The notes under the pieces: generated by a model
What the model was told of the DNA's origin: nothing
The model's database searches: none
Seen by the model: the letters and a program-made list of their open reading frames with translations, nothing else
Position numbers and translations under genes: made by a program
In this document: in pieces, positions 7,121 through 64,000 of the stretch
Layout: each line of letters opens with the position of its first letter
Position numbering within the stretch: position 1 is the first letter of the stretch
Assembly (NCBI RefSeq): GCF_006345805.1
Contig: NC_042999.1
Location: 89,590,001 to 89,654,000, forward strand
Direction of reading: 5' to 3'
DNA: 64,000 bases
Source: Octopus sinensis
Lineage: Eukaryota

Positions 7121-7289
7121 TATCCTGTTTAATGCTCTAATGGTTCAGCCACTTCACCATCTATAAATACAGATTGACAAATTAAGTACCAGACTGAAAT
7201 ATTGACTGGGTTTAATATAATTGCTGTGAAAGCAATGCTTCGAAAAGGCAGAAGTCCAATAGCTGAAACCAGTAACAATAAATGAATAC

Positions 7290-18174: not shown

Positions 18175-19170
18175 TTAACCATTTAGCATTTAAACTAGCT
18201 GTATCTGGCATAAATATTCTACTTGCTTTGTGTTCAGACTGTCCAAATCCAGCCTCTCACACCTACCCTAATATTTATTATTATTATTATAATCTTCCTC
18301 CTTCTCCTCCTCCAGTGCTTTAAATCCGAGTTTTGTCCCTGTTAACAGGGGTGGCCGCCATCTTGCCCAGTTTTGGGCATCCTCCTTTTTCAAACCAACC
18401 CTCCCAATCTCCTCCTCCGCCTGTCCCTTCCACCTTTTCCTTGATCTACCTTGCTTTTGCGCTCCATTTACCTCAAACAATCACCCTCCTCAGAACATGC
18501 TCTTCATCCCTCCTCCACACATGCCCATACCACCTCACTCCATTCGCCCTTGCCAACCATTCCACTGATTCCTCCAACCCCAGCATTCCCATCAAATCCT
18601 CAGTCCTCCTCTTATCAAACAGCTTCACTCCACACATTTCTCTCTCAAAATTGCCATCTCTCTCTCCATCAGATACTATGTCTCACTCCCATACAGCATT
18701 GCAGCTCTTACACAACTCTTATAGACCCTTCCTTTCATGTTTAATGAGAACCTTTCTGCATATAACAATGCTTTACATTCCCTGAACTTCACCCAGCCAA
18801 GTCTCACTCTTGCTGTCACAGCTGCTTCACATCCATCACTTACATCCACCCTATCTCCCAAATAACAAAAGCCTCCCACCATTTCCACCTCATCACATAG
18901 CGTTTCCACTGGTTCATCATTTAACATCCGTTTTCCATGCTGGCATGGGGAGTATGGTTTGACAGGTGCTATCCAGCTGTAGAGCTGCCCAGACTCCATT
19001 GTCTGTTTTGGGATGGTTTCTATAGCTGGATGCCCTTCCTAACATCATTCACAAATTAAACAATCACATCAATGAAATCTCAAAGCTATGAAATAATAGA
19101 TGATTAATTCAAAACAACTTGAATAAATAAGTATTGTGTTTGACAGAGTAATCTGAATGCTAAAGAGTTA
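18175..19170. mobile_element. TTAA-flanked MITE interrupted by RTE fragments (~18270-19040)
   Basis: Left half ends CACACCTACCCTA and resumes CATCATTCACAAATTAAACAATCACATC to AATGCTAAAGAGTTA. Confidence 0.75.
18330..18905 (-). mobile_element. RTE-clade LINE RT fragment
   Basis: GFCYLGDRV...AAVTARVRLGWVKFRE...KGRVYKSCVRAAMLYGSET...GRSRKRW. Confidence 0.9.
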
Positions 19171-19695: not shown

Positions 19696-21249
19696 TACTA
19701 TTAATTAATGTATGTACAAGTAGGGGCATGTGGCTTAGTGGTTAGGGTGTTGCCTGCATGATCATAAGATTGGTTTCAATTCCTAGACCAGGCAATGCAT
19801 TGTGTTCTAGAGCAAAACACTTCATTTCACAAAAACAAGCAATCCTACAATGGGTTGGCATCCTGACCAGAGTAGGGGATTATATACACCACAGAATCTA
19901 GGAAACCAGTCTTATGAGCCAATTCCTCAAAAATGGCATTTGATCCTTTTTGGATATACAAGCACAGTATGGTTAAAAAAGTTCATTTCACAATCATAAG
20001 GTCCCAGGTACAAACCAACTGTATAGCATCTTGGGCAATTATCATTTTCTATAGCCTCAGATCAACCCAGTAAAACTGAGAAAATGGAAACTATAAAAGC
20101 TCATCTGACAGAGAGTGCCGGTAATTCAAAGATACAGTTTTTTCACACACTATATCACATTGATTCTGCTTGAGAATTACATTAACGGTACACTTCTCTT
20201 TGGAACATCCAACCATTTACAGGCTAATTAAATGAGCTGGTAATACAGCTGATCAAAACTGAGAGAGGACCACTCATATATATGTATATGGATGATTGTA
20301 TATCTGTATGTACTGATACAGATACCTGGTATTTCATTACTGTTAAGTTGTACCAAATTACGAATTTTATTCATAATCATGATCATATACCATCCACTTT
20401 CCATGCTGATATGGGTAGTACGGTTTGACAGGAAACTAACAAGCTACAGGCTTGTGTCAAACACTATTGGCCTTTTTTGGTATGGTTTCTATGGCTTGAT
20501 GTCCTCTCCAACGCCAACCACTTTACAACGCAGACTTTGTGCTTTTATCTTTGTGCTTGGGTGCTTTCTTTCATGCTCCTGGCACAAATGAGGTTACCAT
20601 GAAAGTTGCAAGACAGAAAAGAACAGAGAAGAAGAGAAGGAAAGAGAGGGAAAAAGCTCACTCTACTGCGAAGAAGTATTTATGAGGGGAAGGTGGAGAT
20701 GAGCAGCTGAAGAAGGTGGAGTGGCTGAAAGAGAAAGTGCACCTGCACTTGTTAACAATTATCAATATTCATATATTCATGGATCTTCAGATAAATTACT
20801 ATGTGTATCTCTGTTTAATATTATTTTGTCAAACACAGAACATTCTAATGGACTGGGCATAACTTCTTAGCATAATCTTTAAGGGTAACTTTATCACAGT
20901 GTAAAAAGTGCTTGCAAGGGAGATAAATCTTATACGAATACTAAAATTAGTCTTGTCCATCCATCCATCCATCCTTAAATACATATTTATACATAGATCA
21001 CTGATGAAATTTCTTCTTTAAAAATAAAAAGTAAAAACTTTTCTGCTTCCAAGTCACATTCAATTATAAGTGACTGTTGATTGACTGACTGATTGATTAT
21101 GGCAGTCAGGTGCGCGCGCATGCACACACATTCACTCACACACACACATACACCATCGTCGTCATTGTCATCGTCATCATAGCTTTCATGTGTGGCAGAT
21201 GCACAGGGGCAATAAACACCACAGATGCTCAAAAAACAGATTCCATCAC

Positions 21250-22331
21250 ATTCCAGGTGGAGAAACTAGTAGCTGATAGCTTCCACTACTTAGGTGACCA
21301 AGTTAGTAGTGGAGGTGGATGCTCAGAGAGTGTTACCACTAGAATAAGAATAACCTGGGCAAAGTTTAGAAAGCTTCTACCCCTACTGGTGACAAAGGGC
21401 CTCTCGCCCAGAGTGAAAGGTAGATTGTACGATGCATGTGTGCAAACTGCCATGCTTCACAGCAGTGAAACATGGGCCGTGGCTGCTGAGTACATGCGTA
21501 GGCTCAAAAGAAATGAAACCAGCATGATCTGCTGGATGTGTAATGTCAATGTGCACACACGACAGAGTGTAAGCGCTCTGAAAGAAATGTTGGACATAAG
21601 AAGCATCAGATGCGGCGTGCAAGAGAGACGTTTGCGCTGGTATGGTCATGTACTATAGATGGATGAGGAGAGCTGTGTGAAGAAGTGCCACTCCCAAACA
21701 GTTGAAAGAATCCAGGGTAGAGGTAGACCCAGGAAAACATGGGATGAGGTGGTGAAGCATGACCATCGAACGTTGAACCTCACAGAGGCAATGACAAAAG
21801 ACCAACACTTCTGGAGATATGCCGTGACTGCAAAGACCCAGCAAATAAAGTGAGTTCATGGCTGTATCCTACACCAGTTTTGCATAACCAGTCCCAGCCC
21901 ATTCAAAAGTACCTGGGATTGTAGGGCGACATGCTGTGCTTGAGGAGACCTATTGAGGAGTCAAGTACATCAGCATCAAAATGAAAATCAAATGGAAATT
22001 GTAGTCGTGATCCCTGTGCCAGTGGCACGTAAAAAGCACCATCTGAACGTGGCCAATGCCAGCGCCACCTTGACTGGCTTCTGTGCCAGTGACACATATA
22101 AAGCATCAATCGATCATGGCTGTTGCTAGCCTCCTCTGGCCCTTGTGCCGGTGGCATGTAAAAAGCACCAACTACACTCATGGAGTGGTTGGTGTTAGGA
22201 AGGGCATCCAGCTGTAGAAACACTGCCAGATCAGACTGGAGCCTGGTGCAGCCTCCTGGCTACCCAGACCCCAGTCAAACCATCCAACCCATGCTAGCAT
22301 GGAAAACGGACATTAAACAATGATGATGATA

Positions 22332-28840: not shown

Positions 28841-29292
28841 TTTCATGCTTAAGTATTCGCAGGTATACTTCCTGTAATAACAATCACAACACCCAGAAAA
28901 AAGTAGAACGAAATAGTAACGTGGTATTGATGTTATATAATGAAAAACGCCTGAACGAGGTGTATAAGGAAGAATAAACTTGTTCAATGAAAAAATCCAC
29001 ACAAACTTTACAATCATTCACTAGATTTGGTATTTTAACGAGAACTTAAAATTTTATAAAATACGATTTTGATACAACGATCTGAACCTTATACGTAAAC
29101 AAAGTCAGATAAATAGAAATCCTTTATTAAATAGTTAATTTAAATGTTTAAATGAGGTCAGTTTAATTCATCTTAAGCTATTCTGAATATTTGTCTCAAG
29201 CTAAACACTGCATCAGTTATATTAAAAAATTTCCTAGGATATGAAATGTCATTAGTGTTTACATGGCTTTATGAGAGTGATTCTTGTCCTAC

Positions 29293-29454
29293 CTCCACAG
29301 GAAGACGCCTGTGTTGTATCTGACTGGACAGTTCTATAAGTATATCCCTCTGTTTATCTGTCAGGTAGGCTCTGGGCTCAACATTAGCATCCCACTGACT
29401 TAACCGTTCTCTTAATGCCTTCTGATCGAGGAACTTTGTCGGCATATCCGCCAT
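29293..29454 (-). CDS. COG3: COG3 (conserved oligomeric Golgi complex subunit 3) coding exon 1
   Basis: ATG at 29454; MADMPTKFLDQKALRERLSQWD...LTDKQRDILIEL...RLPVE resembles the metazoan COG3 N-terminus (REKLALWD...LTDRQ); donor GAG|GTAGGA; 162 nt, phase 0. Confidence 0.93.
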
Positions 29455-29600
29455 TTTGACATTTTTATAAACTGATCGTCCCAGCTTCGCATGCCACGTC
29501 GATTACGGTGTTAATTACAGAGTATAGGCTGATGAATTAACGTCCTGGATTATCAGCACTACTGCTTTCATGATCGCATTTGTCAATCCCTGCATTAGAA
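29440..29600 (-). promoter_or_regulatory. COG3 proximal promoter/5' UTR with a YY1-type motif overlapping the start codon
   Basis: Minus strand reads GTCAAAATGGCGGA at the ATG (CAAAATGGCG is the YY1-type consensus); CpG-containing sequence upstream. TSS not determinable. Confidence 0.5.
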
Positions 29601-31249
29601 AAGCTATGTTCAAAACAATATTACCTAAGAAAAATTACATTTTAAAGCTAGACTTTTACGAAAGTTATAAAAATATGTTAAAAGAATAATCCTAGTTTTA
29701 AAAAGATGCTCAAGAATTAGAATTCTGCTAACATATTCTGATCTCTCTATAACAAATCTAAATTGTTGAATACGTTAGTATTTCCTACACTCCTACTTTC
29801 TTTCTGAGTTAGTTTTATGTTTGTCAATTACACTAGTTTTACCTAGTGTTACTTTGGTAAACAATAACTTTTGTAACATTTATCGGGTCGTCCATACGGA
29901 GAGAAGGGCACGAAGCATTGGCAGTTGTAAATTTTGTTTTGATAAATTATATTCATGTAACCATGTTTCTACCTCAAGCATTTCATTTAGATAATATTAA
30001 GAGACTTGAAGCAAATGCTGTAACATTTTAGAAGGGGTTTTTCAATAGTATCTTTGAAAAAAAGAAAAAAAAAGATTCTATCCCAAATTTGTTGGTTAGT
30101 TTTGGTCCATTGAAGTAAATGATGGTAACCATCATCATTTTAACACCCTTTCCATACCTACATTGGTTGGATGAAGTTTATTCAAGCAGATTTTTCTATG
30201 GCCCTTCCTGTTACTAACCCTTGCTTGTTTCCAAGTAAGGGCAATGTTTCCCAATGGCCAACATGATTTTGCAGAATACTGGAAATGAATAACATTGCTT
30301 GTATGACAGCGACACTCATTTAAAACAATCATGGGATATCTACGACAGGCTTCATTCAGTTTTTTTCTTCCAAATCCACTCACAAGGCTTTGGTCATCCC
30401 TAAGTAATAGAAGACACTTGAAGTGGGACAGAACTCAAAACCATGTTGTCGCGAGTGTGGTTGTCGTGGTAGCTACTGTTGTTGCTGCTGAATGAAAATG
30501 TGTTTCTCAGGCTGGATCTAAAACTAACAGATGATACTTGTGAATAATTAACAGATTTTATTACTGCACATAATGTTTTTTGTGTTGGTCTTTTAATAAA
30601 TACTAACAACAAGAACTACACACTGGTAGAGACATACTTCCAGGCTTCGTGTCAAGTTAACTGATATAGTAATCTGTGACTGGCCCATTACAACTGGAAA
30701 ATGCGTTATGTTCATAGATGAATTTTCTTACAAGAAAAGATGTCTTATTAGATGAATTTCCTTGTAGAACAAAAAGTACAAGTACAAAAGAAAATTTACT
30801 ATTTTACTTCTGTATATCTTTCATATCACGAAGATGAACATTTCTGAGATGAAGATCAAATATTACAAATTCAACGTTTGTTTTAATACTGGTACTGTAC
30901 TCATGATGCTTGCAGGCCTTCACCACATTATAGCTGTTCCTGCTATATGTGTAGAATCCGTGTGCACATGCAGCACTTTTCTATGTTGATGTTATTCGAA
31001 CTTTGTACTGATGATGACAGGAGCATTCTGTGGTCCATAAAAAGAAACCAAATCTTTAGTCTCTATATGAGATCATCAAAGATGTCATTCGTAACATCCA
31101 GACATTTGTACATTACTGCATACACTTTATACGCACTTTCTAACAAGTTGTGGTGCACCTGAGCGCTGTATACAATAATTTCATTATTATTATTATAACC
31201 TTTATAGCAACTTCAAGGATTTTAATTGCTCATGTATTTTATTTTCAAG

Positions 31250-32374: not shown

Positions 32375-32573
32375 TTTCTACTAAGTCTGAAATTTAGGGT
32401 GAGGGGTTAGTCGACTACATCGACCCCAGTATATGACTGGTATTTACTTTATCGACCCAGAAAGGATGTGAAGCAACGTCGACTTCGGCGGTATTTGAAC
32501 TCAGAACGTACAGATAGACTTAATGCCGTTGAGCATTTTGCCCTACGTGTTAACGATTCTGCTAGTTAGCCGC
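32375..32573 (-). mobile_element. SINE family A copy
   Basis: Reverse complement of family A. Confidence 0.85.
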
Positions 32574-33902: not shown

Positions 33903-34119
33903 GGTGCCGAGCTGACAGAAACGTTAGCACGCCAGGCGAAATGTTTAGTTGTATTTCGTCTGTCTTTACATTCTGAGTTCAAATTCCGCCGAGGTCGACT
34001 TTGCCTTTCAACCTTCGGGGTCTATAAATTAAGTAACAGTTGCGTACTGGGATCGATCTAATCGACTAGCTCCTCACCCCACCCAAATTTCGGGCCTTGT
34101 GCCTCGAGTAGAAAAGAAT
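33903..34119 (+). mobile_element. tRNA-derived SINE family A
   Basis: GGTGCCGAGCTGACAGAAACGTTAGC...GAGTTCAAATTCCGCCGAGGTCGACTTTGCC...GTAGAAAAGAAT; other copies ~37953-38132, 39022-39177, 43129-43345, 44938-45092, 48247-48455, 63532-63735 (+) and 2020-2170, 28660-28840, 32375-32573, 41300-41470 (-). Confidence 0.9.
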
Positions 34120-34358
34120 ATTTAAAATGTTCAGTTAGAATTACACATCTAGCGACACGGATGTAGAGATAAGGAACAAGATTCATTTTTTTTTAAGGAA
34201 GAACCTGTCAGATATTCAGGTCTCACCCCGTTTTGGTCCTCTGGGCCTCGGACCAATGTACCAGCTAAACCTGTCTCTTATAAACATGAATGTGTAGTGT
34301 GTGTATGTGCGCGCGTGTGTGTGTAACATAAGTATATGTATAATCCTTTATACTAAAT

Positions 34359-35456: not shown

Positions 35457-36230
35457 TCGGCTGAATGTGTGTGTGGGGGGTGTAAATTTAATCTGAAAAA
35501 TGTTCATATGCATATGGAAAATTGGAGAAAATAAAAACGCACTTGATAGGGAATCCCGGAGCAAATAAATACTCATTGCATCCAAGAATTTTTAAGAAAA
35601 TCGTATTTAAAGAAAACAAAACAACAATATTGAACGGAAATACAAGCAAACAAAACTCCTTCAAATGTTCAACTTGTAAATTGGTTTATCTTTACAAGTC
35701 CGGTTTTGTTAACCAATCAAGGTCGCATGAACCAAAGCAAGCTAATAACGTACTGTCACCACATGAAAGAACATATACATCAGCCAATCATGTAAGAAGC
35801 GTCGTTTCTATTTTTTTTAGAATAGGATTCCCTCTTCCCCCCCATTGCTTTGAAGTGTGTGGTGTAAGAACAAATTTTTAATCCAGGCGAAAACGGAGAA
35901 ACTCCAACTTAAGTGAGACAGCTATTTCAAAAATCCGCGCAGACCACCAATAATAGAAACGACGCTTCTTACATGACGTATATGTTCTTTCAGATGGCGG
36001 CAGTATATTATTAGCTTGCATTTGGTTCATGCAACCTTGACTGGTTATCAAAACCAGTCTTAGAACGACTAAGTCAGTTGACAAATTGAACATTTGAAGG
36101 AATTTCATTTGTATTTTCTGCTTTCTATAATACGATTTTCTTCTATCAATTGCACTTTTTTTTCAGTTTTCCTGATGAATATGAACATTTTTGAGATTAG
36201 ATATACACACACTTATATGTATTCAGCCGA
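35457..36230. repeat. Large imperfect inverted repeat (arms 35457-35812 and 35952-36230; 139-bp spacer)
   Basis: Reverse complement of the right arm aligns to the left arm (TCGGCTGAAT, TAATCT.AAAAATGTTCATAT, CCTTCAAATGTTCAA, GCATGAACCAAA, GAAAGAACATATAC, CATGTAAGAAGCGTCGTTTCTATT); opposite-strand ORFs share ERTYTS. Confidence 0.9.
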
Positions 36231-36465
36231 CAAATACACTTTATGGGAGACAGCTATACTGAAGTCTTGCGGTCTAAAGTGACACATTATGAGTACTGTT
36301 TTCAGAGGTGCTCCAACGATATAATAGTGTTACAGGACTTTCCACCACCACCAAAACCAACACGAGCACTACCCCTACAGCTCGACTAATTTATTTATAA
36401 AACTACTGGACTCTTGCTCAACCCATCATGTAATAAATGCATTTTTATTTTTCAGGTTTTTCGCA

Positions 36466-37317
36466 ATGTCTTCGCCAGTCTTGAAATTATTCCAGATTAT
36501 TATGATACTATATATGGCATTAGGTGGTAATACATTTGCAAGAGAAGTTAAATATAATTCGAAAGTTGCAGGAAACAATACAAAGTCCAACATTAAAAGT
36601 ACAGCTACACCCAGTTCAAAAGTAATGAAACACAGAGTAGCTTCTTTAAAGAATCAGTCAAATAATATACACAATCTGAGAGTTGATGTTAACTCATCAA
36701 AATACCCTGTTTACGCAATGACAATGAAACCAACTTTGAAAATGAAACCAGCTTTGAAAACGAAACCAGCTTTGAAAACGGAACCAACTTTGAAAACGGA
36801 ACCAACTTTGAAAATGAAACCAGTTTTGAAAATGGAAACAACTGTGAAGGTGAAACCAATACGAAAATATAAAATATTACAATCCATCATTGTTAAAAGC
36901 TTCACTTTCAAAAATAACTCAACTAACCAAACCCTAGGAAAAACCAATGGTGTTTCTGCTTCGACAGAAAATTCCAGAATTGGGCAGGTGAAACGAATGT
37001 CTTTATTTCCTTCAAGATTATTTAGAAGACTTTCTCATAATCTACAAGGTGCTGGAAGTAAAAATGCTAGTAGTAAACCTGATAATGGCTTGGGTGTTCA
37101 TCTTATTCGAGTGTATCCCCCCATAATGCATGGTTTCCATAGGTTTTTCGTAAGGCGTCGGCCTTTTGCTAATTATACAGACAAAAATGATACTCTTCTT
37201 AAAATTGTATTAATTTCTAACGAAACTCCAGCGGTAAATAATTTCTTCCAACCATTTCTCGACTTTTTTCGAAGAATGACGATGTCCATTAAGTCATTTC
37301 TTCACGCCGTGAAATAA
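36466..37317 (+). CDS. Orphan secreted basic protein, 283 aa: signal peptide, (M/T)(K/E)P(T/A/V)LK hexapeptide repeat, many N-glycosylation sequons
   Basis: Longest ORF in the window (852 nt). Preceded by branch point CTAAT (~36385) and acceptor ttttatttttcAG (36454-36455), ATG 10 nt into the exon. Hydrophobic N-terminus ending TFA-RE. AATAAA at 37361-37366 followed by a T-rich element. No TE motif recognised. Confidence 0.8.
   Translation: MSSPVLKLFQIIMILYMALGGNTFAREVKYNSKVAGNNTKSNIKSTATPSSKVMKHRVASLKNQSNNIHNLRVDVNSSKYPVYAMTMKPTLKMKPALKTKPALKTEPTLKTEPTLKMKPVLKMETTVKVKPIRKYKILQSIIVKSFTFKNNSTNQTLGKTNGVSASTENSRIGQVKRMSLFPSRLFRRLSHNLQGAGSKNASSKPDNGLGVHLIRVYPPIMHGFHRFFVRRRPFANYTDKNDTLLKIVLISNETPAVNNFFQPFLDFFRRMTMSIKSFLHAVK
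36724..36867 (+). repeat. Coding 18-bp minisatellite, 8 units (ATGAAACCAACTTTGAAA consensus)
   Basis: MKPTLK MKPALK TKPALK TEPTLK TEPTLK MKPVLK METTVK VKPIRK, all in frame. Confidence 0.95.
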
Positions 37318-37360: not shown

Positions 37361-37366
37361 AATAAA
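37361..37366 (+). terminator. Polyadenylation signal of the orphan gene
   Basis: AATAAA 44 nt after the stop codon, with T-rich downstream sequence. Confidence 0.65.
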
Positions 37367-37870: not shown

Positions 37871-38466
37871 CGATAGGGGTGGCCCGCCTCGGATGACGCT
37901 TTATTAGCCAACGATGAAAATTATTATTATTATTAATATTTCGAACTGATTCAGGGAGGTGAGCTGGCAAAATGATTAGCGGCATTCCTTACGTTATGAG
38001 TTCAAATTCCATCGAGGTTGACTTTGCTTTTCATCCTTTTGGGGGTCGAGAAAATAAGTACCAGTTATGTACTGGGGTTGATGTAATCGACTATCCCTCT
38101 CCCCAAAATTTCAAGCCTTGTGCCTATATTACAATGGATTATTTCAAACTGTTTTGCTTCTCACCACTATTATGGAATTTAGGTAGGTTTACTTTTTGGA
38201 TAACAAGCCACCACGTGACCTCAACCATCCAAGAACTTTCGAATGATCTTCACGGGTCCAGCGAGTTATTATTATTATTATTATTATTTGTTTGACTTTT
38301 GCTTTATATTCTCAAGAGACAACAGGTCGGAAGTTCGTGATGTTGTTATGCCTAGTGTGCCATATATTTGGTTTTGTATTTAGTGTTGTACTAGTGAATG
38401 TAAAAAAAAAACCCCGAAAATTATGTTTGTTTTAAAACTTGAGATTACATAGAAAGTATTTTGCGT

Positions 38467-38467
38467 A

Positions 38468-38565
<98 letters not shown>

Positions 38566-39020
38566 CATTATTATTATTATCATCATTATGTGATTAAAAC
38601 TCGCAGCTTATTTTGCTGGGTATGATAGAAAGCGTCAGCTGTCCACAGCCAATAGACTAAGGTGACATTTGTTTACTGGTCATGCTTCAAGAACCTTGCG
38701 AAGAATTCTTGCAGTTCCAAGTAATGCTGATATTTGTAGGTGTTCTACCCTCACACTTGCACCAATCGTTTTTAGCCATGTTAGTAGATGAGTGTTGATT
38801 CTTCCAAGTGCATCAATTACTATTGGTATCATGTCTACTCTCTTCATTGACCACAGCTTTCGTATTTCTCACTTCTAATTGTCATAGCTATTTATTTTTT
38901 CTTCTTTCACACTGATCCTGTTGTCACCGGGGCATGCTATGTCGATTATCATGCATGTTCTTTCTTTTTTATTCACCACTACAATATCCGGTTTCCGATG
39001 TCTGGTCAGGTGATCACACT
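38467..39020 (-). mobile_element. R4/Dong-like (RLE-type) non-LTR retrotransposon 3' end with (ATA)n tail
   Basis: RKPDIVVVNKKERTCMIIDIACPGD...IPIVIDALG...SALLGTARILRKVL*; the (ATT)n run at 38467-38590 is its tail. Confidence 0.88.
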
Positions 39021-39287
39021 GCCGCTACGTTCTGAATTCAACATCCGCCGAGGTCGACTTCGCTTTTCATCCTTTCGAGATCGATAAATTAAGTATCAGT
39101 TGCGTTCTGGGGTCGATCTAATTGACTGGCCCCCTCCCCACAAATTTCGGGCTTTGTGTCTATAGTAGAAAGGATTATGGACATTTAATATATATTTTGA
39201 AACAAGATTACTTCTGAGTCAATTAATACTTCTAGATATTCTCAGCCTCATCATCTGAATGAATTAGTAGTTACAATAATCATATGA

Positions 39288-40700
39288 ACTAGCGGGACCC
39301 GTGAATATTTCACAGAATTAATGGTAAACTTACTGGGCTATTTCTGAAAACTTTATCCAAAAAAACATGAAAGCGTAGCCTGATAATCTGATAATCACTG
39401 AAAAGTGAAAGTAATTGGAATATGATGATTACTTCTGCACTTTATATATACAGCTTATATAAATTCATGTACAATTTTATAGACTTAATACATAGCACTA
39501 CCCCTCTTTCCATCTCCTCCTTCGTTTTACCATTTTTTCTCTCTCCTTTTTCTTTCGCTCTTCGCCTTTCCCGTCAACTAATCACCTGAAAGCGTTACAG
39601 ACGGGCTAAGTAACGGAGGAGAGAAAAAACATAGTTAAGAAAAAATATACACTTTAATTAAGCAAGCAAACAACTAATTACCTAATTGATTAAGCAAGAA
39701 AGCCACTAATTACTTAATTAAGCATGCAAGCAACTAATTTGTTAACTAACTGATTAAGCAAGCAAACAACAAATTAAATAACTTATTAATCAAGCATACA
39801 AACCACTAATTACTTAACAAATTGATTAGGCAAGCATGCAACTAATTAGTTAACTAAATTATTAAGCAAGTAAGCAACTGATTACTTAATTAATGAACTA
39901 ACTTATTTACGCAAGCAAGCAACTAATTAATTAAGCAAGCAAACAACTATTTAACTAAGTAATTAAGCAACCTACTTATTAAACTAATTCAGCAAGCCAC
40001 TAGTTAATTTAATAATTCATTAAGTGAGCAACTAATTAATTAACTAATTAAGCAAACACGCAACTAATTAACTAACCAATTAATTATACAAGCAACTAAT
40101 TAACTAATTTAGCTTGGAAGCAACTAATTAATTTAGCTGGGACGCATCAAATTAATTAAGCAAACAACTAATTATATAATTAACCAAGTAAGCAACTAAT
40201 AAATTAACTATTTTATTAAACTACTAATTAACTAAAGTGAAAGAAATTGGAATACGATGATTACATAATGCACTTCATGTACAATTTTATAGACTTGATA
40301 CTCATCGCTCATAAAATAAATATTCGCTCTTATTTTCCCATTTTCTCCATAAACAGAAGAAATGACATTTTTCTCAAAAATGCCCATTCTCTCTGCCCCA
40401 CCCTGTGCAACGTCTCATTTCACTCTACCGATTCATCTGCTCATCAGAAATACCTTGCTGATTGCCACCCCGCTTTCAAGCTCATGCAAACTCTTGCTTC
40501 TAACTCATTCTGTTTCCTCTTTGAGACCTCGCACTAACCACAATACTCAACCCTTCCTCCTTTTGTAGGGCATCAAACTTATGTGTTTCCTAGAGATGCT
40601 TACCCGGAATTTTTTCAATGGAACATCTGTCGCGTCAGTCTGACCAGCTACAGTGGAACTGAGAAGCCTACCGAGAAACTAACAATTCCTTAGTACTTCC
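39288..40700 (-). mobile_element. Helitron-like element carrying an internal AT-rich satellite
   Basis: Minus-strand end ...GTGAAATATTCAC-GGGTCCCG-CTAG|T (hairpin plus CTAG); the other end was not identified. Confidence 0.5.
39655..40235. repeat. Degenerate AT-rich minisatellite, ~28-31-bp unit (TTAAGCAAGCAA.CAACTAATT.ACTAA)
   Basis: Recurrent AAGCAAGCAACTAATTAA motifs over ~580 bp. Confidence 0.85.
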
Positions 40701-44721: not shown

Positions 44722-44792
44722 GCATCGGTGGTTCAGTGGTAGAATGCTCGCCTGCCACGCGGGCGGCCCGGGTTCGATTCCCGGCCGATGCA
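44722..44792 (+). tRNA. tRNA-Gly(GCC)
   Basis: GCATCGGTGGTTCAGTGGTAGAATGCTCGCCTGCCACGCGGGCGGCCCGGGTTCGATTCCCGGCCGATGCA; full cloverleaf, A/B boxes, TTTTT terminator ~8 nt downstream. Confidence 0.98.
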
Positions 44793-45811
44793 CAATAACT
44801 TTTTGTTGAATAATATGTTTCTTTTTATTAGTTAGGGAAATAAAAAAAAACGAAAAAGGATTAACTCGAGAAATCTACTATTCACGCCTGTTCCAATAAA
44901 TTAATGGAAGGATAAATAATTAATAATATCAATATGTTGCTACGTTCTGAGTTCAAATTCCGCCAAGGTCGACTTTGCCTCTCATATTTTCGGGGGTCGA
45001 TAAATTAAGTACTAGCTGCATACTGGGGTCGATCTAATCGATTGGCCCCCTCCTCCAAAATTTCGGGCCTTGTGCCTAGAGTAGAAAAGAATATCAATAT
45101 GTAATACAACGATCGATGAATAAGTCCTTTTGATTTTCAGCTGTTGACAGTATACAGTTCAGCTAAGGTTGACATTACAAACATTACATCTTTGACCTTC
45201 CCGTCCGCTTATTTTTGGTCTTTTTTCAGACGCATCGAGCGATCACATAGAGGTTCTCTCATTGATTCATGATTACACACGTTGGCAGCTCGCCTCATCG
45301 AGATATCAGGTGATGCCCGTGAGGGCCCCTGGCTTTCCCAACGCCTTAGCCTCGCCACCGCCCACTGTAATGCTGCGAGTGTGCTGGCTTACTTCAGTAG
45401 GTACCGTTAAACCTTGAGGTATGTGACCAGTTGCTGTGAAAAAAAAATCCCCACATATGGTTTCAATACAGTTTTAACAAAAAGATTTTGAAGAATTGGA
45501 AGAAAGATCTATCACACTTTCCACCCCTACTTTCTCTAAGTTCGAGAAAGTGGATCCAATGAAAGCGCCTCAACATGGTCACTCGACCTGCTAGAAGTAG
45601 CAACAAAATATCTCCCCAAATCTCACACTTTAATTTATTTCATATAACAATTTGAAGGTAATGGCCTCGTTGCTTCCAGGTTTCCAACAGACAAATTACT
45701 GGCGGTTAGTGTGAAAAGAGTGTTTAATTGGATACCAAACAAATATTTCAAAGGGGTTTCGTAAAGTACCAGTTTTTTGCCGATGTTTTATTCTTCGCCA
45801 AAATTTCTTCA

Positions 45812-46191
45812 GCCAAATTCATCCACTAACCTATCCATCCATCCGTTCGTCCACCCATTCACCCATTCATTCATCCATCCCACCCGCCTACCCATCCATC
45901 CATCCATCCATCCATCCATCCATCCATCCATACATACATACATCCATCCATCCATCCATCCATCCATCCATCCATCCATCCATACATACATACATACATA
46001 CATGCATGCATGCATGCATGCATACATGCATACATACATACATACATACATACATACATACATACATACATACATACATACATACACACACAACACACAC
46101 ACACACACACACATACATACATACATACATACATACATACATACATACATACATACATACATACATACATACATACATACATACATACATA
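45812..46191. repeat. Compound (TCCA)n/(TACA)n/(TGCA)n/(CA)n microsatellite
   Basis: Directly visible. Confidence 0.98.
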
Positions 46192-46360
46192 CGAGGATCA
46201 GTTATAATTTTATTCAACATACTCCCGCTCAGATTCATTCACTTATTGCAGCGCCCCTTTAGTTTTTCTAAGCCCGGTAAAAGAACTCAGAAGCCTGGAC
46301 CTTCAACCAGACCTTTCACGACACCCTTAAAGTCAGGAACTTTTCAGCACCTCCTAGTAC
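46191..46360 (-). mobile_element. mariner-derived MITE, truncated
   Basis: Minus strand starts TACTAGGAGGTGCTGAAAAGTTCC and carries a decayed mariner C-terminus (GLEKL..RCNK...EYVE*). Confidence 0.7.
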
Positions 46361-47401
46361 ATGCATTCCAAAAATTCTCCAGCACGCATATTTACAAACA
46401 CCGGGAACTCTCTCAACTCAAAAACTCTTGTAGCTTTGCTAGCGACCGGCTTGAACTCTCCCAAGTACTTAAATAAAACTCAGAGAAAAATCATACTAAG
46501 TAAACTCCTCAAGAAATTACTCACTTCCCAATGACCCCAAAATTATTGGATTGGGATAACCTCAACAAAAACCAGGAAGGGAAAAATCTCTACGAAGATG
46601 AAAATTTACAAAAGCAAATTTTACGATAAATTATTATGAGTGAGATTTTAATATGAATACACACAACACAATCGGAGTAAAATTTGTAGATGTAAAGGGA
46701 TAATGATCTCTACGTATGAAAGAATATTAAGATCACCAGGAAAAGAGAGAAGAAAATAGAAAACACGGGACGAATGAAGCCTTCGTTATTCGTGTTGAAA
46801 CTCTTCGAAGACAATTTGTTTCTACACGATTTCTATATGATTTTTAAACTAACACCGAAGTCCATTTTATTTTAGACTTACACCGTAGACCTTTTTATTT
46901 TGCTTATAGTTAGCCTTTGAAATGTACTTCGGCTTTTTGTTTTATTTATTTACATCAAAAACTAATTTTCGGTCGTTTCTTTTGTTATCTAGTGATTATT
47001 TCTTGAAAAAAAAACCCCAACAAAGTATTATAGATATAATAAATGTCTGCTGTACTCAAATAGTTGCTTTTATGGCAATGAATTTATCGAAGCTCCCTTT
47101 AAAATGTTAATAAATAGTCAAGATATTTAGATATTCTACCCACCATGTATTTTTAAATAATTAATAATGCCACCCTGCGCGCGTTGAGAGTAAAATTTAG
47201 TTGTAAGATTTTAAAGACTTAAGCAGTCATAATATTCTCTTTTCAAAGTTTTAAAGAGTCATTAAAGGCGGAAATAGAATTAGTTGATGCAACTAAAATT
47301 CAATAAGTACATGAACAAAAAAAAAACTTTCTTTCAAGTAACACAAAAGCAGACAAGATTCATATAGTTAAAATAAGGCATCTGACGTTATCTGCGCTAT
47401 A

Positions 47402-47473
47402 GCCGTGATCGTCTAGTGGTTAGGACCCCACGTTGTGGCCGTGGTAACCCAGGTTCGAATCCTGGTCACGGCA
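47402..47473 (+). tRNA. tRNA-His(GTG)
   Basis: GCCGTGATCGTCTAGTGGTTAGGACCCCACGTTGTGGCCGTGGTAACCCAGGTTCGAATCCTGGTCACGGCA; genomic -1 base is A (G-1 is added post-transcriptionally in eukaryotes); T-tract downstream. Confidence 0.98.
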
Positions 47474-48017: not shown

Positions 48018-48769
48018 CTCCTCCTCTCTCTTTCTTCATTTACGCCTCGTTCTCACACCGCTTTCACTCTCTATCACTTTCATTGCCGAATGTTAAATAT
48101 TTTTAATGTTAAATTTTGAGTTGTAAGCGTTTATATTTTATAATCTCGGTATTTACGAGCTTCTTTTTGACTAAATGTACAACTCCTATACATTAAAATC
48201 TTTTATCGCTCTGAAAAGCGATATACGGACACCGGTATAAAATCTCCGTGGCGAGCTAACAAGAGTTAGCGCGTCGGACAAAAATGCTTAGCGGCCTTTG
48301 TTCTGAAGTTCTGAGCTCAAATCCCGCTGAGATCAACATTGGCCTTTCATTTTTTTCGGGGCTGATAAAATAAAAGTACCAGTCAAGTACCAAGGCTGAT
48401 GCAGTCGACTTGCCCGCTCCCTCAGTAATGCTGGTTTGGTGTCAAATTAGAAAGAATTATAATTATTGGGTAAAGAAGCTAACATAGCTGGTTCCCTGAT
48501 CAATATAGATTAGTCAAAATTTTTCGATAGGGTCAACCACCAACACTTGGCAGTTCTTCTCACGGCAGCTGGTTTCGATCTCGTCTTCTGCGGTTGGATT
48601 GCTGCAATGTATAGCGACATCTGTTAGGTGTTGAACGTGAATGGCCATCTGTCAGAGCCATTCAAGTATTATACGCTTGGTCCATCAAGGATGTCTCTTC
48701 TCATCTCTTCCGTATGTACTGTTTTTTAGCCACTATTGCTGAAACTAGAGACATTGAGAAACGTCCCGC

Positions 48770-49270
48770 ACAAACTAGAACTGTATCGGCATACACGGAC
48801 GATATCAACGACATAATTTTGGAAGTTAAGCACATCGAGGTGATCGGCATTATTCTAAGGAACAACGAAGCAGTGAATGGAGAAATATCAAATAATAAAA
48901 GTCGGAGGTATCTAGAGAGGCAGGTTCATGCCAACAACGTCGTAAGACGCCGGACGGTCCCACCGGTTAAATTGTGCGCAGTCTGGTTTGGTCCAAACTT
49001 CGAAGTGTAAAAGAACTGAGATATGGTGACGAGCAGGGTGTCCAATCTCATCCATAAATAGACCGAGAAAAAGCTATCTCTGAAAGGTCGGGCAGAGGTG
49101 GCGAATGCTTACATCGCCACCATCATATATTATCGCTTAACCCCAGTTCAGTCTCACTAAACTGGAGCGCCTGTTCTTATGCTTTCTACGGAAGGGACAC
49201 GTTCCACTGGTCAGGCATTCTATTTGCCGTCAACATCATTGTCAAACCCGCTTTTCTATGGCTCGTTTCT
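48770..49270 (+). mobile_element. Tx1/L1-like LINE RT remnant
   Basis: VSAYTDDI, EAVNG, VKLCAVWFGP, LSLKGRAEVANAYIATIIYYRL. Confidence 0.8.
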
Positions 49271-51612: not shown

Positions 51613-53778
51613 GGGGAGACCGGGGTTAGTTGGCTACATTTTTTTACATTTTCACTGACAGAGCAATACTATTTAATGTATTCTACTGCATCGTGTATGA
51701 CACGCATAAATCAACCATAGCATAAGACTTACAAAGCTAGAGATCTCATCTTCTTATTTTCTGGATTTATATTTTGTGCATTTTCTAAAACCACTTAAAT
51801 GTGTCAACTTGCCCCGATACCGGAGCAAGTTGACACATATAATGGGGTATGTTGACACATGAATGCATTTTCTTGGAACATACATGTTAGTGGACAGAAA
51901 CACATGATATAAGCTTGTTGGTTTGATCAAGGGCCTTTATTACGGTTTCATTACATATCATCATCGAAAGTCACAATTTGGGCATGTGAATATTGTCAGA
52001 CCTGGTGTGCATGCCTCGTGAACCCAACCTTTACAATCAAAGCACTGAAGCCACACTTCCCTTCTTTTGCTGTTGCAAAAAGGCTCGCAGCACACTAAGC
52101 AATAGCACTTTTCCTCATCAGAGGTATCACTTTCTTGAATTTGAAGTTTTTTCTTAACAGTTGGACCTTTTCCCTTCGTTTACTTGCCCTTACTGAGTCC
52201 CTTTCCTATCGTTCCTTTATCAATGTTTGTCTTCTTTTTACTTTTACTTTTTGTCTTTTCTTCTATGATTGCTCTTTTAACCGGCGAGTCAGTGAGGATT
52301 TCAGAACAACGTTCCTTTCTTCCTCTGGTTGATTCTTTCCTAGGGCCTGCTTTGGGTAGTGGACGGATTTGAAATGGTGAAAGAAAAGACCTGGCGGCTA
52401 TGTCGCTTGAAGGCCCAGGTGTTGCAGCTGCTGAAGGCTCAGGTGTTGTAGCTACTGAAGGCCCAGGTGCTGAAAGTGCAGGATCTGGTCGGTCAGTGAC
52501 ATAGCTTGGTGCAAAGTCACTGTCTGTGAAAATGTTGCGATTAAAAGGACATTCCTGTAGAAGAAAAGCCACTAAGAATGTTCGTCGGAGTTGCAGTCAA
52601 TGGGCATGCAGTTTTGACAATACACGGAATGTCATAAACGGTCATCGTCTGGCCAGGATGGTTGATATGCCAGTCATCAATGGCAGTGTTTGTGTACTTC
52701 TTTAGTGGTCCATTGACAGCTTTGTCCAACGGCTGTAAACTGTGTGTGCAGTGAGGTGGGAAAGAAAGCATGGTGATGCCATTGTCTGATGCATAAGTAG
52801 CGAGACAGAGCTTTTAAAGTGATGCCAAATGTCCTCGAAGCTTCCCGCAAGGAGATGACACGAGCTCGGACCTGTTGAATAGCCTGTTGGATTACATCAT
52901 GTGGAAGGGTTGCCCTCTCGCCTTTGCGTTTGTAGTGTCGCACCATGACAATTGTAGATCTAGGTCAGTAAAGAGAGAGAGAGAGAGTGGAGGGAGGCAA
53001 AAAAACAATTTAGCTCATTGCATAAACCAACAGGGAAAGCAAAACGAAGCTCTGAGTGTTTACCTACTTTTTAGTTTCAAGCATGCCTGGTCACGGCATA
53101 ACTTCATGCTTATATATCAGTGGTACAGGTTACAAAGCTGAGGCAGAATACAAGCTGTTGACTAAGTAGGTAGCGGTATGAAGATAGAATAGGTTGGTAT
53201 ACATAAAGATAGCTGATCTAAAACTATAGCAAACAATACATAAATTACTCAATGAACTGATCCAATGTACCAGACATGAATCAAATAGCAAACACTCTTA
53301 GTTAAAATGGGATAGATACAGTCTGTGAATCAATGTAAGCAACCTACAACTTTATCACAGGCCGGAGCAAGTTGACACACTGTGTCAACGTGCCCCTGTT
53401 TACATGTGTCAACTTGCCCCGACCCCATTTCCCTCGTAAATGTAAACACTGAGAGAAAAACACTAGGGTTTCGCAAGAATCCATTTGTATAGGGTCGTGA
53501 GAGATATTTTACTAACTCCTTAAGGTTTAATACACATAATGCAATTAAACAAAATAACTAATTATCAAAAATGTGGAAAATAACTTACCAAGTGGAAAAT
53601 TCCAATGTTGTCCGCGTGTAGCACACAAACTCTCACAACGGCGACGAAATCAAATGAAAGGGAAGCTTATACTAACAGCACTACTATGATTTCATTAAAT
53701 CGACCGAAAGTAATTTCGCATTTTCTCTAGAGAGAATGTGACAACTTGCCCCTGTAGTCAACTTGCCCCGGTCTCCCC
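51613..53778 (-). mobile_element. pogo-family DNA transposon, internally deleted, with DDE remnant and C-terminal PHD finger
   Basis: TIRs GGGGAGACCGGGG(TT/CA)AGTTG(G/A)CTACA at both ends, flanked by TA duplication (51611-12, 53779-80). HTH MVRHYKRK...LREASRTFG (52946-52800), FPPHCTHSLQPLD motif, PHD CLVC..CFDC..HEAC..CPNC (stop 51961-63). Subterminal GTGTCAACTTGCCCC repeats. Confidence 0.92.
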
Positions 53779-55356
53779 TATTCACGACAGGTTAAATAGC
53801 TTAAAGAAACTGTTTAATGCATTGGTGGTTTTATGGTTGAATACGTTTTTTCTTGACCCCTATTTCTGTTTCCGATCGAAATTTGTGAAGATTTCTGAAT
53901 TTGATATACTGTTAGGTTAGTTTAAATATGTTTGAGACATAATTGATCTGTAAAAAAGGCCATTTTCTCTGCGCTTTGCTATGGAGAAAAAGAACTCGCT
54001 TGCGAGTTCTTGTTTGGAAAAAACCCCAGTCATCCTTGAACTAATATGGACTAATATATGCATTTTGAGTTCTTTATCCTCTCGTCAGTTTCAGATACCA
54101 AACAGGACAACACTGAAATAACTAGAAGCCTTGGCTTCCTTATAAGAAATTAATGGAAATGTATCAATGAAACCGTGCTACAACTGCTAGGCCGGAACAA
54201 AATACATGGCATGCGAAACTGTTGTGAAATGAGCAAACTTTGGATTTATTTTTTCCCACTAATTCACAACACTGCTTCGCATAATTGACGTGTTGATATT
54301 TGTGTAATTTCAAAGCCCATAGAATTTTGGTTTTCTACGATCTGAATTGATTGTCTAAATTTTTGTGTTGACGTCATGGTAGTCTTAACGCAAGTTTGGA
54401 ACTTCAATGATATTTACGGCAAAATATCACAACTATTTTATTCAATGTGCAACTGTTATGTTTTCTTGCTGCATGATGTATTCACAATATCAACTTAAAA
54501 CTTATATAATGCTTTGCCATTTGGTAGTGGCTGGTAGTTCACAACACTTGATAATTATTTTGCAATGGATATTGCGAAGGGATTCACTTGAATTTGTCGA
54601 AATTACATAAGTTATTGAAGTTATTGAAGTTATAAAGAAAGTATTGGATAAGACAAGTATTGTTATAGAAGATATGCTAGTGTCTTCTACATCGCTTTGA
54701 AAGAGTGAATAATTTTAGTAGATAGCGGTCTATTTGAATGTAGAAATAGGAAAGTGCCGCAAATTGTTGATATTTTGTAATGTTGTGAAGCCATTTCATA
54801 AGTGATTGGACTGTGATTAGTTGGGCATTCCTATAGAATAGAGTCGGATATTATCTAGACCACCAAAAACCATATCTCCGTGAATATATATATGATTATG
54901 TAACGCAGATAACGATTGCACAAATAAAAACTGATTGGCGAGAGACGGAGAATTTTTTCCACCATTTCCGTAATTTTTCAATTTTGACATTTTTAAAAAG
55001 TAATTTTTTTGCTCTGACTTATATTTTAAACGTCTATAATTATGATTCTTAAAAAAAAAAGGCGCAACAAAAATTTGGAGAATACATAAAAAACTTTTAA
55101 ATTACTAAAAGAAGGAAGGTAGGCATTTCCGTTCCCCAATACTCAAATTTATGTTTGTTGTTTAGAAGATTTGTGATCAACGATACTTGAAATATACACA
55201 TCAGAAGATATTACGATCTTTTGCGCATTAGAACATTTCTAACTCATGACGGTGAGCTGCACTAAATTATATTCTAGTACAATTATGTCTGAATAAAACG
55301 AATGGAATGTAGAATTAAAACATTACAAAGGTTAATAACATATACCAGACGCAGTT

Positions 55357-55427
55357 GCATCGGTGGTTCAGTGGTAGGATGCTCGCCTGCCACGCGGGCG
55401 GCCCGGGTTCGATTCCCGGCCGATGCA
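55357..55427 (+). tRNA. tRNA-Gly(GCC), single-nucleotide D-stem variant
   Basis: Identical to 44722-44792 except GTAGGATGC instead of GTAGAATGC; TTTT terminator downstream. Confidence 0.93.
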
Positions 55428-56425
55428 AAACAGCTTCTTTTGGAAAACTTCATATTGTTTTGGTTTAATTTTTTGCTTCCATTCAATTTAATCGACCATC
55501 TAACATTTTTAATAAGGCTGTAATAAATTCCGGTGAAAGCTGATCATTTGGAGGTTTTCAGATAAAACCTCCATGCATGTGCTTCATCCCTTAACTCCTG
55601 ACAGTCTAAGTGGACCGACTGCAGCCAGGTCACAGTTCCTGGATACTACTGCTACTGTTTGCAGTATAACTTGTGCTTTTTCTAGATGGTCACAGTGCCC
55701 AAAAGCCAAGATGCTTTGGGTGTCATAGCACCTCCGGTCTGAGACATCAGTTGAATGTAGAGCAAATGATAACTTCTTTTGTTCTCTTTCATTCCTTCTT
55801 GGCCAGATCCAGTAGGAACTCTTCTCAGCTGCTTCAGACATTGTCTTAGTTCTCTTTCTCTCAGAAATTAAGAGCCATTTAATAATACCACAGGCAGATT
55901 TGTCTATTGTCCCTGCTCCTTCGCTATTACTTTCTTAGAGAGGACTTTGTTTGAAAGCCAGATTCACTCAATTTGATTGCTAAACTGCATATTTTTCAGT
56001 CTTGTAGATATGAGCTTCCGCTTTTTTATAGGAATATGAAAAATATCAAATGATAATCAGTTCTTTATTTGACATCTGCCTACAACAAACCCTCATCCGT
56101 GATGATTATCATTTATACATATAGGATGAATTATATTTACATCCATGAGGGCTTGCATCTATACCTATCTTTTGCATTTTCTTGTCAGTCGTAGATTTTG
56201 AAATTTACGGCGAAAATGTAATTTTGTCAGTTGCACCAAAATTAATTTTAATGAATGTTAACCAGGTGTGGACTAAGAGTATTAAGGGCCCTCGGGCATA
56301 ACTGTTTACCGGGATCCTTAGCATAAATTTAGAAGAGTTAACATGTACAGTGCGGGCAACGCCCGATTGACCAGCGGTTCAGTCCGACCCTGATGCTAAC
56401 GTCTTCCAGTCAGAAAAATCGGTGT

Positions 56426-63531: not shown

Positions 63532-63735
63532 GCGAGCCAACAGAATCATTAGCACACCGGAATAAATGCTCAGCGGCATTTCGTCCGCTTTCATGTTCTG
63601 AGTTCTGATTCCACCGAGGTCTACTCTGCCTTTCATCCTTTCGGGGGTCGATAAAATAAGAACCAGTTGAACATTAGGCGCAGATGTAACTCCACACCCG
63701 AACTTGCTGGCCTTGTGCCAAAATTTGAAACGAAT
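63532..63735 (+). mobile_element. SINE family A copy
   Basis: GCGAGCCAACAGAATCATTAGC...GGGGTCGATAAAATAAGAACCAG. Confidence 0.85.
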
Positions 63736-64000
63736 ATAGTAGAAGTAGAAATGAGAAAGAGAAAGAGAAAGAGATGGAGGAGACAGCCCGCCTGTAGGTT
63801 AGACTGAGGTGTATTAATGAACGGTTTCGTTTCACACATCGACTGATTTTTCTTTAGATGCGTTCTAAATTGTCTGTGTGTCTAGCAGCAGCAACAGCTT
63901 CCTGGTAGATGTGACACTCCTGTATAGGTTTTACCAAGCTAGTAGTTATTGAGATATGAAGTATTTTAGGGCTCTGAAGAGGAAGGTTAGTTTTTGTGAT

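Follow-up and report, generated by a model that had tools for sequence, protein, structure and literature searches.

The longest open frame in the 64-kb window of Octopus sinensis DNA studied here (the whole stretch of 64,000 nucleotides) contains an open reading frame (ORF) at positions 36466–37317 that we identify, from its sequence, as a genuine protein-coding gene with one coding exon. The gene lies head-to-head with COG3, it is intact and in the same position in the argonaut Argonauta hians, and it has been kept by purifying selection since the two lineages parted. With moderate confidence, we interpret it as a genuine, selectively maintained octopod gene, so far found in O. sinensis and A. 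hians, whose product would be a secreted, N-glycosylated protein with a cationic C-terminal domain that binds a polyanion; secretion, glycosylation, and ligand binding are all predictions from sequence features. The gene is uncharacterized and lineage-restricted, at the level of octopods, and we see no evidence that it represents a new kind of biological system.

Coding potential, conservation, and synteny

Read from stop to stop, the frame that holds the ORF extends over 329 codons, followed in the window by a 253-codon frame that is a simple-repeat artefact (45715–46473) and then by frames of at most 189 codons. At the composition of the window, about 1e-5 ORFs of 283 codons are expected by chance per 64 kb, or about 4e-4 when the repeat codons are excluded from the ORF, and each of the five alternative frames across the same stretch is broken by 6–28 stops. 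The predicted protein of 283 residues contains 49 Lys and Arg against 11 Asp and Glu (isoelectric point, pI, about 10.9), 10 N-x-S/T sequons, five basic clusters (RK133, KR176, RR187, RRR230, and RR269), and neither Cys nor Trp, the joint lack of which from the codons has a probability of about 1e-4. An earlier note on this DNA had counted these residues, sequons, and clusters by hand, and all of its counts were exact on recount. Upstream of the start codon, a polypyrimidine tract followed by AG reads as a 3′ splice acceptor, and its position 5′ of the ATG implies at least one upstream non-coding exon; in a cross-species blastn comparison of O. sinensis with A. hians, no conserved block corresponding to such an exon or to a promoter was found between COG3 exon 1 and the acceptor.

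Searching 1.84 billion cluster representatives with phmmer, we found a sole true relative, GAB1606415.1, hypothetical protein Ahia01_000924100 of A. hians (E=2e-36, query residues 114–282), a species with a chromosome-level assembly (bioRxiv 10.1101/2025.05.16.652989). BLASTP over the region of residues 135–283 gives 44% identity and 68% positives across 152 aa (E=2e-40), and identity between the two species in the C-terminal 150–170 residues or so lies at 46–52%. The deposited A. hians model, of 196 aa, starts at an internal Met and is 5′-truncated by 56 codons. In the A. hians stretch of BAAFZT010000052.1 used for comparison (hereafter L002), the full open frame occupies L002:9833–10591 and encodes 252 aa starting with MSSLILQLFFMCLIPYVTLG (MSSLILQLFF...), the truncated 5′ part being L002:9833–10000; this extension reaches a conserved ATG with a signal-peptide-like leader. 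Nucleotide conservation between the species begins abruptly at the polypyrimidine tract and AG and runs through the 10-nt leader into the ATG (blastn block 36440–36492), with the DNA upstream of the acceptor unalignable, and a TGTT[A/G]AAATAAAG block is kept about 45 nt past the stop in A. hians. The acceptor, start codon, single coding exon, and polyadenylation signal that the earlier note had read from the O. sinensis sequence are therefore borne out, the acceptor, ATG context, and AATAAA being kept in A. hians.

The A. hians ORF also lies head-to-head with COG3, as in O. sinensis, where the neighboring called gene carries both COG3_N and COG3_C and so agrees with the placement of the ORF beside COG3 in the earlier note. 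COG3 exon 1 is 80% identical between the two species, and in A. hians it is separated from the full ORF start by 5.6 kb. Within the 20-kb neighborhood, blastn returns four alignable blocks, namely COG3 exon 1, the start of the ORF, its C-terminal half, and a tRNA-Gly(GCC) at 44722–44793(+) that is 100% identical over 73 nt to L002:14397–14469, downstream of the orthologous ORF. As judged from these blocks, the microsynteny of COG3, the ORF, and tRNA-Gly is common to both octopods. Two other tRNA genes lie in the window, tRNA-His(GTG) at 47402–47473(+) and a second tRNA-Gly(GCC) at 55356–55428(+).

Over the C-terminal domain, the Nei–Gojobori method (NG86) gives a nonsynonymous divergence (dN) of 0.34–0.40 and a synonymous divergence (dS) of about 1.7, hence a dN/dS of about 0.2, a ratio that carries the caveat of saturated synonymous sites; mismatches at codon positions 1, 2, and 3 amount to 0.34, 0.20, and 0.53, that is, in the order 3>1>2. 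From this ratio together with the mismatch pattern, we conclude that purifying selection acts on the protein. The earlier note had proposed estimating dN/dS and checking synteny with COG3 across octopods, and it had named a disrupted ORF in close relatives as a sign against the gene; the ratio is low, the head-to-head position is kept, and the syntenic ORF of A. hians, a distant octopod, is intact. By this comparison, the gene is older than the divergence of Octopus from the argonauts. That divergence is a deep one among incirrate octopods, with an age of the order of 100 million years, and the saturated dS and unalignable intergenic DNA are consistent with such depth. The description of the gene as an orphan consequently stands only in part: we detected no homologue outside octopods among annotated and called proteins, but the gene is not limited to a single species or genus, as it has a syntenic orthologue under purifying selection in A. 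hians, of the superfamily Argonautoidea.

These results bear directly on the explanation that the ORF is non-functional, whether a chance frame, a transposon-derived sequence, or a retrocopy picked up by automated annotation. One could argue for it from the lack of a domain and of literature, from the fact that the only annotations are automated ones reading "uncharacterized" or "hypothetical", from a composition rich in K, N, S, L, and T that partly mirrors an A-rich strand, and from the SINE-like (short interspersed nuclear element) and palindromic repeats nearby. However, the length of the ORF is far beyond chance, neither the window nor L002 contains a second copy, no poly(A) tract follows the ORF or its polyadenylation signal in the sequence, and a Pfam search finds no transposable element (TE) protein domain in it. 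The intact syntenic orthologue, a dN/dS of about 0.2, and splice, start, and polyadenylation signals kept amid unalignable DNA dispose of the chance, transposon, and pseudogene readings, and we consider this explanation close to refuted.

The gene is equally isolated in domain and structure databases. Neither the O. sinensis protein nor its C-terminal domain taken separately matches any Pfam-A family at E<=10, and the sole match of the A. hians protein, to Mucin (E=0.26), scores 11.7 bits where the cutoff is 34.7. A profile built from the two species has no match in the Protein Data Bank (PDB). The statement in the earlier note that there is no recognizable domain is thus upheld, and a hit to a characterized family or TE, which it had given as grounds for dismissing the candidate, was found in neither Pfam nor PDB. 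A PDB match to R. bromii Amy4 (E=0.31) involves the repeat region only and was rejected as a homologue, and five weaker phmmer matches were rejected likewise, being bacterial, Logan, or unrelated proteins with an E/P/L/K periodicity that align with residues ~69–135 only. No homologue outside octopods was found in the 1.84 billion representatives (phmmer) or in 5.8 billion proteins (single-sequence and profile searches), searches that covered annotated and called proteins rather than raw cephalopod genomes; the profile search recovered O. sinensis and A. hians only, with no new members, and a metagenome scan for the conserved domain gave 600 pattern matches and 0 relatives.

The RefSeq model and the hexapeptide array

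The only match of the single sequence among the 5.8 billion proteins is the O. sinensis "uncharacterized protein LOC118762507" (XP_036357028.1, UniRef100_A0A7E6ENW2, 271 aa). Since its locus (GCA_006345805.1, CM016861.1:89,616,466–89,637,317) is base-for-base identical to window positions 26466–47317, this 96%-identical match is the gene itself, and we rejected it as an independent homologue. The homology search that the earlier note had suggested thus gave one orthologue, in A. hians, and no characterized family, its best match being the query gene; and the word "undescribed" does not hold for the gene as such, which is already in RefSeq as LOC118762507 (XP_036357028.1) under the label "uncharacterized". 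No mention of LOC118762507, XP_036357028, or A0A7E6ENW2 was found in the literature searched, and three peptide motifs of the protein had no literature match.

The RefSeq protein and the genomic ORF differ in length in a way that is informative about the repeat. XP_036357028.1 is 12 residues, or two LKTEPT units, shorter than the genomic ORF, yet it spans the same 852 nt and is otherwise identical. There are 10 equivalent placements of the missing 36 nt (36770–36814), none of which (0/10) has GT-AG, GC-AG, or AT-AC ends, and we therefore rejected an intron as the explanation of the gap. The lack of canonical splice ends and the in-register position of the gap suggest instead that the transcript alignments behind the RefSeq model came from a six-unit allele and not from one with eight, in which case the number of 18-nt units probably differs between alleles. 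An ab initio predictor would not make a non-canonical 36-nt gap. If the gap does reflect transcript alignments, which is a deduction about the annotation pipeline, the gene would have transcript support, albeit indirect. Together with the 5′-truncated A. hians protein, the O. sinensis model, two repeat units below the genome, is the second database model corrected here.

Tandem Repeats Finder (TRF) reports the array as an 18-nt unit in 7.8 copies (36719–36859, 85% matches, score 177). In frame, it reads as the eight hexapeptides MTMKPT/LKMKPA/LKTKPA/LKTEPT/LKTEPT/LKMKPV/LKMETT/VKVKPI, in agreement with the eightfold hexapeptide repeat of the earlier note, and it makes up 48 of the 283 residues (17%), with no Tyr, Cys, or Gly among them. 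The orthologue in A. hians lacks the array and shows no more than KMSKPKSKKKPLKK in its place. The array belongs to a longer stretch of low identity between the species (12%) that runs from the leader to about residue 114; within this stretch, residues 21–84 are effectively unalignable at 12% identity, and the A. hians equivalent, with a net charge of -1, contains a Thr-rich run, TTTDTATTTTTATTEG. We infer that the array is a spacer rich in Lys, Pro, and Thr that is specific to the Octopus lineage and expandable. As a cue to function, which is how the earlier note had used it, the repeat does not survive the comparison, as it is absent in A. hians and selection acts on the non-repeat C-terminal domain.

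The array is nevertheless the feature on which a structural or adhesive role would depend, in which the protein would be a secretion such as mucus, egg-stalk cement, or a sucker or skin coating, with the Lys/Pro array as its working part. The eight tandem [LV]K-x-[KE]-[PT]-x units, the high pI, the leader, and the probable variation in copy number would all fit such a role, as would the Thr-rich, mucin-like run in the equivalent region of A. hians, with its Pfam Mucin match below the cutoff. However, the part that should do the work occupies less than a fifth of the protein and is missing from the orthologue, selection is concentrated on the domain that lacks it, and the array contains no Tyr, which would be needed for DOPA (3,4-dihydroxyphenylalanine) chemistry, nor Cys or Gly-rich cross-linking residues. 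In addition, the text and one small supplement of the argonaut eggcase-matrix proteome paper contain no match to the ORF motifs. By analogy, the best-known comparison would be mussel foot protein 1, which is built of tandem Lys/Pro/Tyr repeats with the decapeptide AKPSYPPTYK (PMC6282983). Both are molluscan, secreted (here by prediction), highly basic, and carry short tandem Lys/Pro repeats, but they show no sequence homology, and whereas mussel foot protein 1 consists of repeats throughout, the repeat of the ORF is Tyr-free, unconserved, and limited to 17% of the protein. The likeness is superficial, since the defining features of mussel foot protein 1 are lacking, and we regard an adhesive or structural role centered on the array as quite unlikely.

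Leader, C-terminal domain, and proposed product

The N-terminal 20 residues form a signal-peptide-like leader, with a Kyte–Doolittle mean of 1.65 over residues 1–19. M1, S2, S3, L6, L8, F9, I14, Y16, L19, G20, and N22 are invariant in A. hians, and inspection of the two sequences shows a candidate -3/-1 site common to both species after G20 (ALG|G in O. sinensis, TLG|L in A. hians), so that cleavage would probably follow Gly20. The earlier note had placed the signal peptide at residues 1–25; the hydrophobic leader is indeed present and kept, but the site at A25 is not conserved, the A. hians sequence there being SIQ|I.

Most of the conservation lies in the C-terminal domain, which is basic and Cys-free in both species (net charge +17 in O. 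sinensis and +13 in A. hians; pI of the whole protein 10.9 and 10.3, respectively) and contains the invariant nonapeptide LKIVLISNE. Both mature proteins are without Cys and Trp, the lone Cys of the A. hians protein lying in its leader. Four to five sequons are shared, at alignment columns 154, 158/160, 204, 240, and 245. Sequons are more frequent than composition predicts in the whole O. sinensis protein (10 vs 3.8 expected, P=0.0009) and in the C-terminal domain of both O. sinensis (7 vs 2.0, P=0.001) and A. hians (6 vs 2.85, P=0.04). At the end of the domain, F261, F264, F268, M271, I275, and F278 are invariant with a spacing of 3-4-3-4-3, and residues 258–283 are the only segment that is helical, with low confidence, in both of our AlphaFold runs. 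The hydrophobic moment of this region is 0.85 in A. hians, a value that 0 of 2000 shuffles reach, and the amphipathicity of the C-terminal helix is suggestive only.

Taken together, the A. hians orthologue shares with the O. sinensis gene the head-to-head position with COG3, the start and leader, the C-terminal domain (44–52% identity), the sequons, the basic pI, and a mature part without Cys or Trp, and differs in lacking the hexapeptide array and the KR, RR, and RRR sites, in its Thr-rich run, and in an N-terminal variable part that is acidic to neutral. The basic sites matter here, because the alternative in which the protein is a prohormone, neuropeptide, or antimicrobial precursor depends on them: once the signal peptide was gone, furin or prohormone convertases would cut at KR176, RR187, RRR230, and RR269, freeing short cationic peptides rich in Phe, for instance MSLFPSRLF or, from the C-terminus, MTMSIKSFLHAVK. 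The signal-peptide-like leader and the five basic clusters are what such a precursor should have, Phe-rich hydrophobic motifs precede three of the sites (SRLF|RR, HRFFV|RRR, and LDFF|RR), and the segments flanking the basic sites are amphipathic and cationic. The di- and tribasic sites are present as the earlier note had counted them; however, none of the four is kept in A. hians (which has NR, TR, GQR, and RS there), and the number of basic clusters does not exceed the expectation from composition or shuffling (O. sinensis, 5 vs 7.1 expected; A. hians, 3 vs 5.1). An amidation signal of the form Gly-[KR][KR] occurs in neither orthologue, there is no internal repeat besides the non-conserved array, and conservation is continuous across the putative cuts, as in a folded or unitary domain and not as in discrete peptides. 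Like molluscan neuropeptide and prohormone precursors, the protein is small, starts with a leader peptide, and has basic pairs scattered along it, but these pairs are neither conserved nor enriched, and amidation signals and repeated conserved peptides are lacking. We therefore consider a precursor very unlikely. Since neither the array nor the KR, RR, and RRR sites are conserved, the cases for precursor processing and for a repeat-based structure both fall away, and the comparison points to the C-terminal domain, rather than the repeat or the basic pairs, as the functional core.

We propose that the gene would be transcribed divergently from COG3 as a non-coding exon followed by the one coding exon. 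The N-terminal signal peptide would be cleaved, probably after Gly20, with the protein entering the endoplasmic reticulum, where it would be N-glycosylated at the four to five conserved sites before release from the cell. The middle region, rich in Ser, Thr, Pro, and Lys, would serve only as a fast-evolving, disordered, and probably O-glycosylated extended linker, and in the Octopus lineage this spacer may have grown by tandem duplication of the 18-nt unit into a length-polymorphic array of eight units. Outside the cell, the conserved, disulfide-free, cationic domain of about 150 residues, with an aromatic-seamed amphipathic helix at its end, would act by binding a polyanionic partner, which could be acidic glycans or mucus, extracellular matrix, or a membrane surface. 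Our preference for polyanion binding comes from the charge, which the constrained domain has kept in both species.

Several observations weigh against this proposal. Binding to a polyanion is suggested by charge and composition only. The AlphaFold models are uninformative, with a predicted local distance difference test (pLDDT) score of 44.5 for the single sequence and 36.7 for a two-sequence alignment of the C-terminal part, and the hydrophobic moment of the O. sinensis helix, 0.64, is not significant (209 of 2000 shuffles). No orthologue appears among the annotated proteins of other Octopus species, where the gene is either unannotated or missing. Logan read assemblies yield no ORF-like product, though contigs of another octopod in them cover COG3 exon 1; the weight of this absence is limited by the short contigs and by the tandem array, which would break assembly. 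When COG3 exon 1 was used as the query, the result was a 61-aa fragment on contigs of about 945 nt, too short to reach the ORF. These contigs, from runs SRR11869384 and SRR11869391 (L003 and L004), match window positions 28851–29674 at 84.6% DNA identity, take in the promoter, first exon, and first intron of COG3, and share 79.6% identity with A. hians in that exon; no literature citation of either run identifier was found. Finally, with its 19-residue hydropathy of 1.65, the leader comes close to the membrane-anchor threshold and would fit a signal anchor as well as a signal peptide.

This last point leads to the alternative of a secretory-pathway protein that stays with the membrane instead of being released, either as a signal-anchored (type II) protein or in some other way, held by its N-terminal anchor or by the C-terminal amphipathic helix. 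Besides the hydropathy value, it could draw on the A. hians hydrophobic run of about 18 residues (LILQLFFMCLIPYVTLGL), on the conservation of the C-terminal amphipathic helix, and on the conserved position beside a Golgi-tethering gene, COG3. Against it, the O. sinensis core measures only 12 residues and is bounded by Lys7 and Gly20/21, small residues at -3/-1, conserved between the species, come after the core, as is typical of a cleaved signal, and adjacency to COG3 at 5.6–7 kb is evidence of synteny and not of shared function. We consider membrane association unlikely and a secreted protein the better explanation of the leader.

To our knowledge, cephalopod genomes contain many lineage-restricted genes, very few of which have an assigned function. 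As a kind, the gene comes closest to the lineage-restricted secreted genes known from cephalopods: like them, it has no homologue outside the clade in the protein sets searched, carries a signal-peptide-like leader, contains low-complexity repeats, and evolves fast except in a core. It differs from them in that it is not species-specific and that, in the window and L002, it is single-copy and not tandemly expanded; described cephalopod novelties are defined by their tissue of expression. More tentatively, one may entertain the possibility that the gene is the founder of an octopod-specific family of secreted, Cys-free, basic glycoproteins, in which the C-terminal domain would have a fold not seen before and act as an extracellular effector or ligand, the array being a recent, tunable spacer. 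If so, the domain would serve a secretion or signaling system specific to octopods. For either interpretation, the comparison makes the conserved C-terminal domain, and not the striking repeat or the dibasic sites, the part to study, and the gene is a tractable one, being single-copy in the sequences compared (the window and L002), encoded by one coding exon, anchored by synteny with COG3, and under purifying selection across a deep octopod split.

Feature coordinates and surrounding elements

Table 1. Positions in the window of the gene, its predicted parts, and its flanking signals
Feature	Position	Strand	Basis or remark
COG3 coding exon 1 (MADMPTKF...RRLPVE)	29293..29454	-	Head-to-head, 7.0 kb from ORF ATG
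Polypyrimidine tract (tttttatttttc) and AG, putative 3′ splice acceptor	36442..36455	+	Read from sequence; nucleotide conservation with A. hians starts here
10-nt 5′ leader GTTTTTCGCA, A at -3 of ATG	36456..36465	+	9/10 nt same in A. hians (ATTTTTCGCA)
Complete coding sequence, ATG start, 283 codons and TAA	36466..37317	+	RefSeq LOC118762507 (XP_036357028.1)
Residues 1–20 (MSSPVLKLFQIIMILYMALG), signal-peptide-like: Lys7, core LFQIIMILYMAL, A-L-G at -3/-1	36466..36525	+	
Residues 21–84, fast-evolving, rich in Ser/Thr/Asn/Lys, probably disordered, net charge +9	36526..36717	+	pLDDT <50
Eight tandem 18-nt units, [LV]K-x-[KE]-[PT]-x hexapeptide array	36718..36861	+	TRF, unit register, repeat family D4
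Two identical adjacent units (TTGAAAACGGAACCAACT x2, LKTEPTLKTEPT)	36772..36807	+	In-register placement of the 36 nt absent from the RefSeq protein
Residues 135–283, conserved basic (net +17), Cys-free C-terminal domain, selectively constrained core	36868..37314	+	BLASTP, phmmer, NG86
Two further kept sequons, N150/151 and N154	36913–36933	+	Alignment comparison with A. hians
Three kept sequons: N200 (NAS), N236 (NYT; NLT in A. hians), N241 (NDT; NNT in A. hians)	37063..37194	+	
Residues 258–283 (NNFFQPFLDFFRRMTMSIKSFLHAVK), conserved C-terminal helix, possibly amphipathic	37237..37314	+	Invariant columns; low-confidence helix in both AlphaFold runs
AATAAA polyadenylation signal, 44 nt 3′ of stop	37361..37366	+	Read from sequence; equivalent position kept in A. 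hians

The DNA around the gene is rich in repeats. A large imperfect palindrome, unalignable to A. hians, lies about 260 nt upstream of the ORF ATG (35480–36208), with nested arms at ~35480–35782 and 35974–36208 that are 81–84% complementary; it gives rise to mirror-image spurious ORFs at 35522–35881(+) and 35878–36108(-) and is probably two inverted copies of one repeat element or an insertion resembling a miniature inverted-repeat transposable element (MITE). The gene is flanked on both sides by an element of about 160 nt, of which three direct copies, 72–85% identical, occur at 33963–34121, 37986–38142, and 39022–39178, and an inverted copy near 32462–32561. The ORF itself is free of this element, whose GAGTTCAAATTCC motif resembles a tRNA B box and which is probably a SINE of tRNA origin. 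Farther away, a reverse-transcriptase fragment at 6746–7129(+) matches Pfam RVT_1 (E=1.7e-10) and belongs to a decayed retroelement; seven other long ORFs of the window, at 10157–10561, 18324–18782, 18679–19038, 21089–21655, 48615–49007, 52183–52596, and 63262–63798, have no Pfam match. Downstream of the gene are an (ATT)n microsatellite at 38466–38590 and an AT-rich minisatellite at 39623–40233 with TAATTAAGCAAGCAA-like units spaced ~28–36 nt apart. The 253-codon frame at 45715–46473 is a simple repeat of the CATC/CATT type that encodes IHPS-like repeats, and its antisense strand is open as well.

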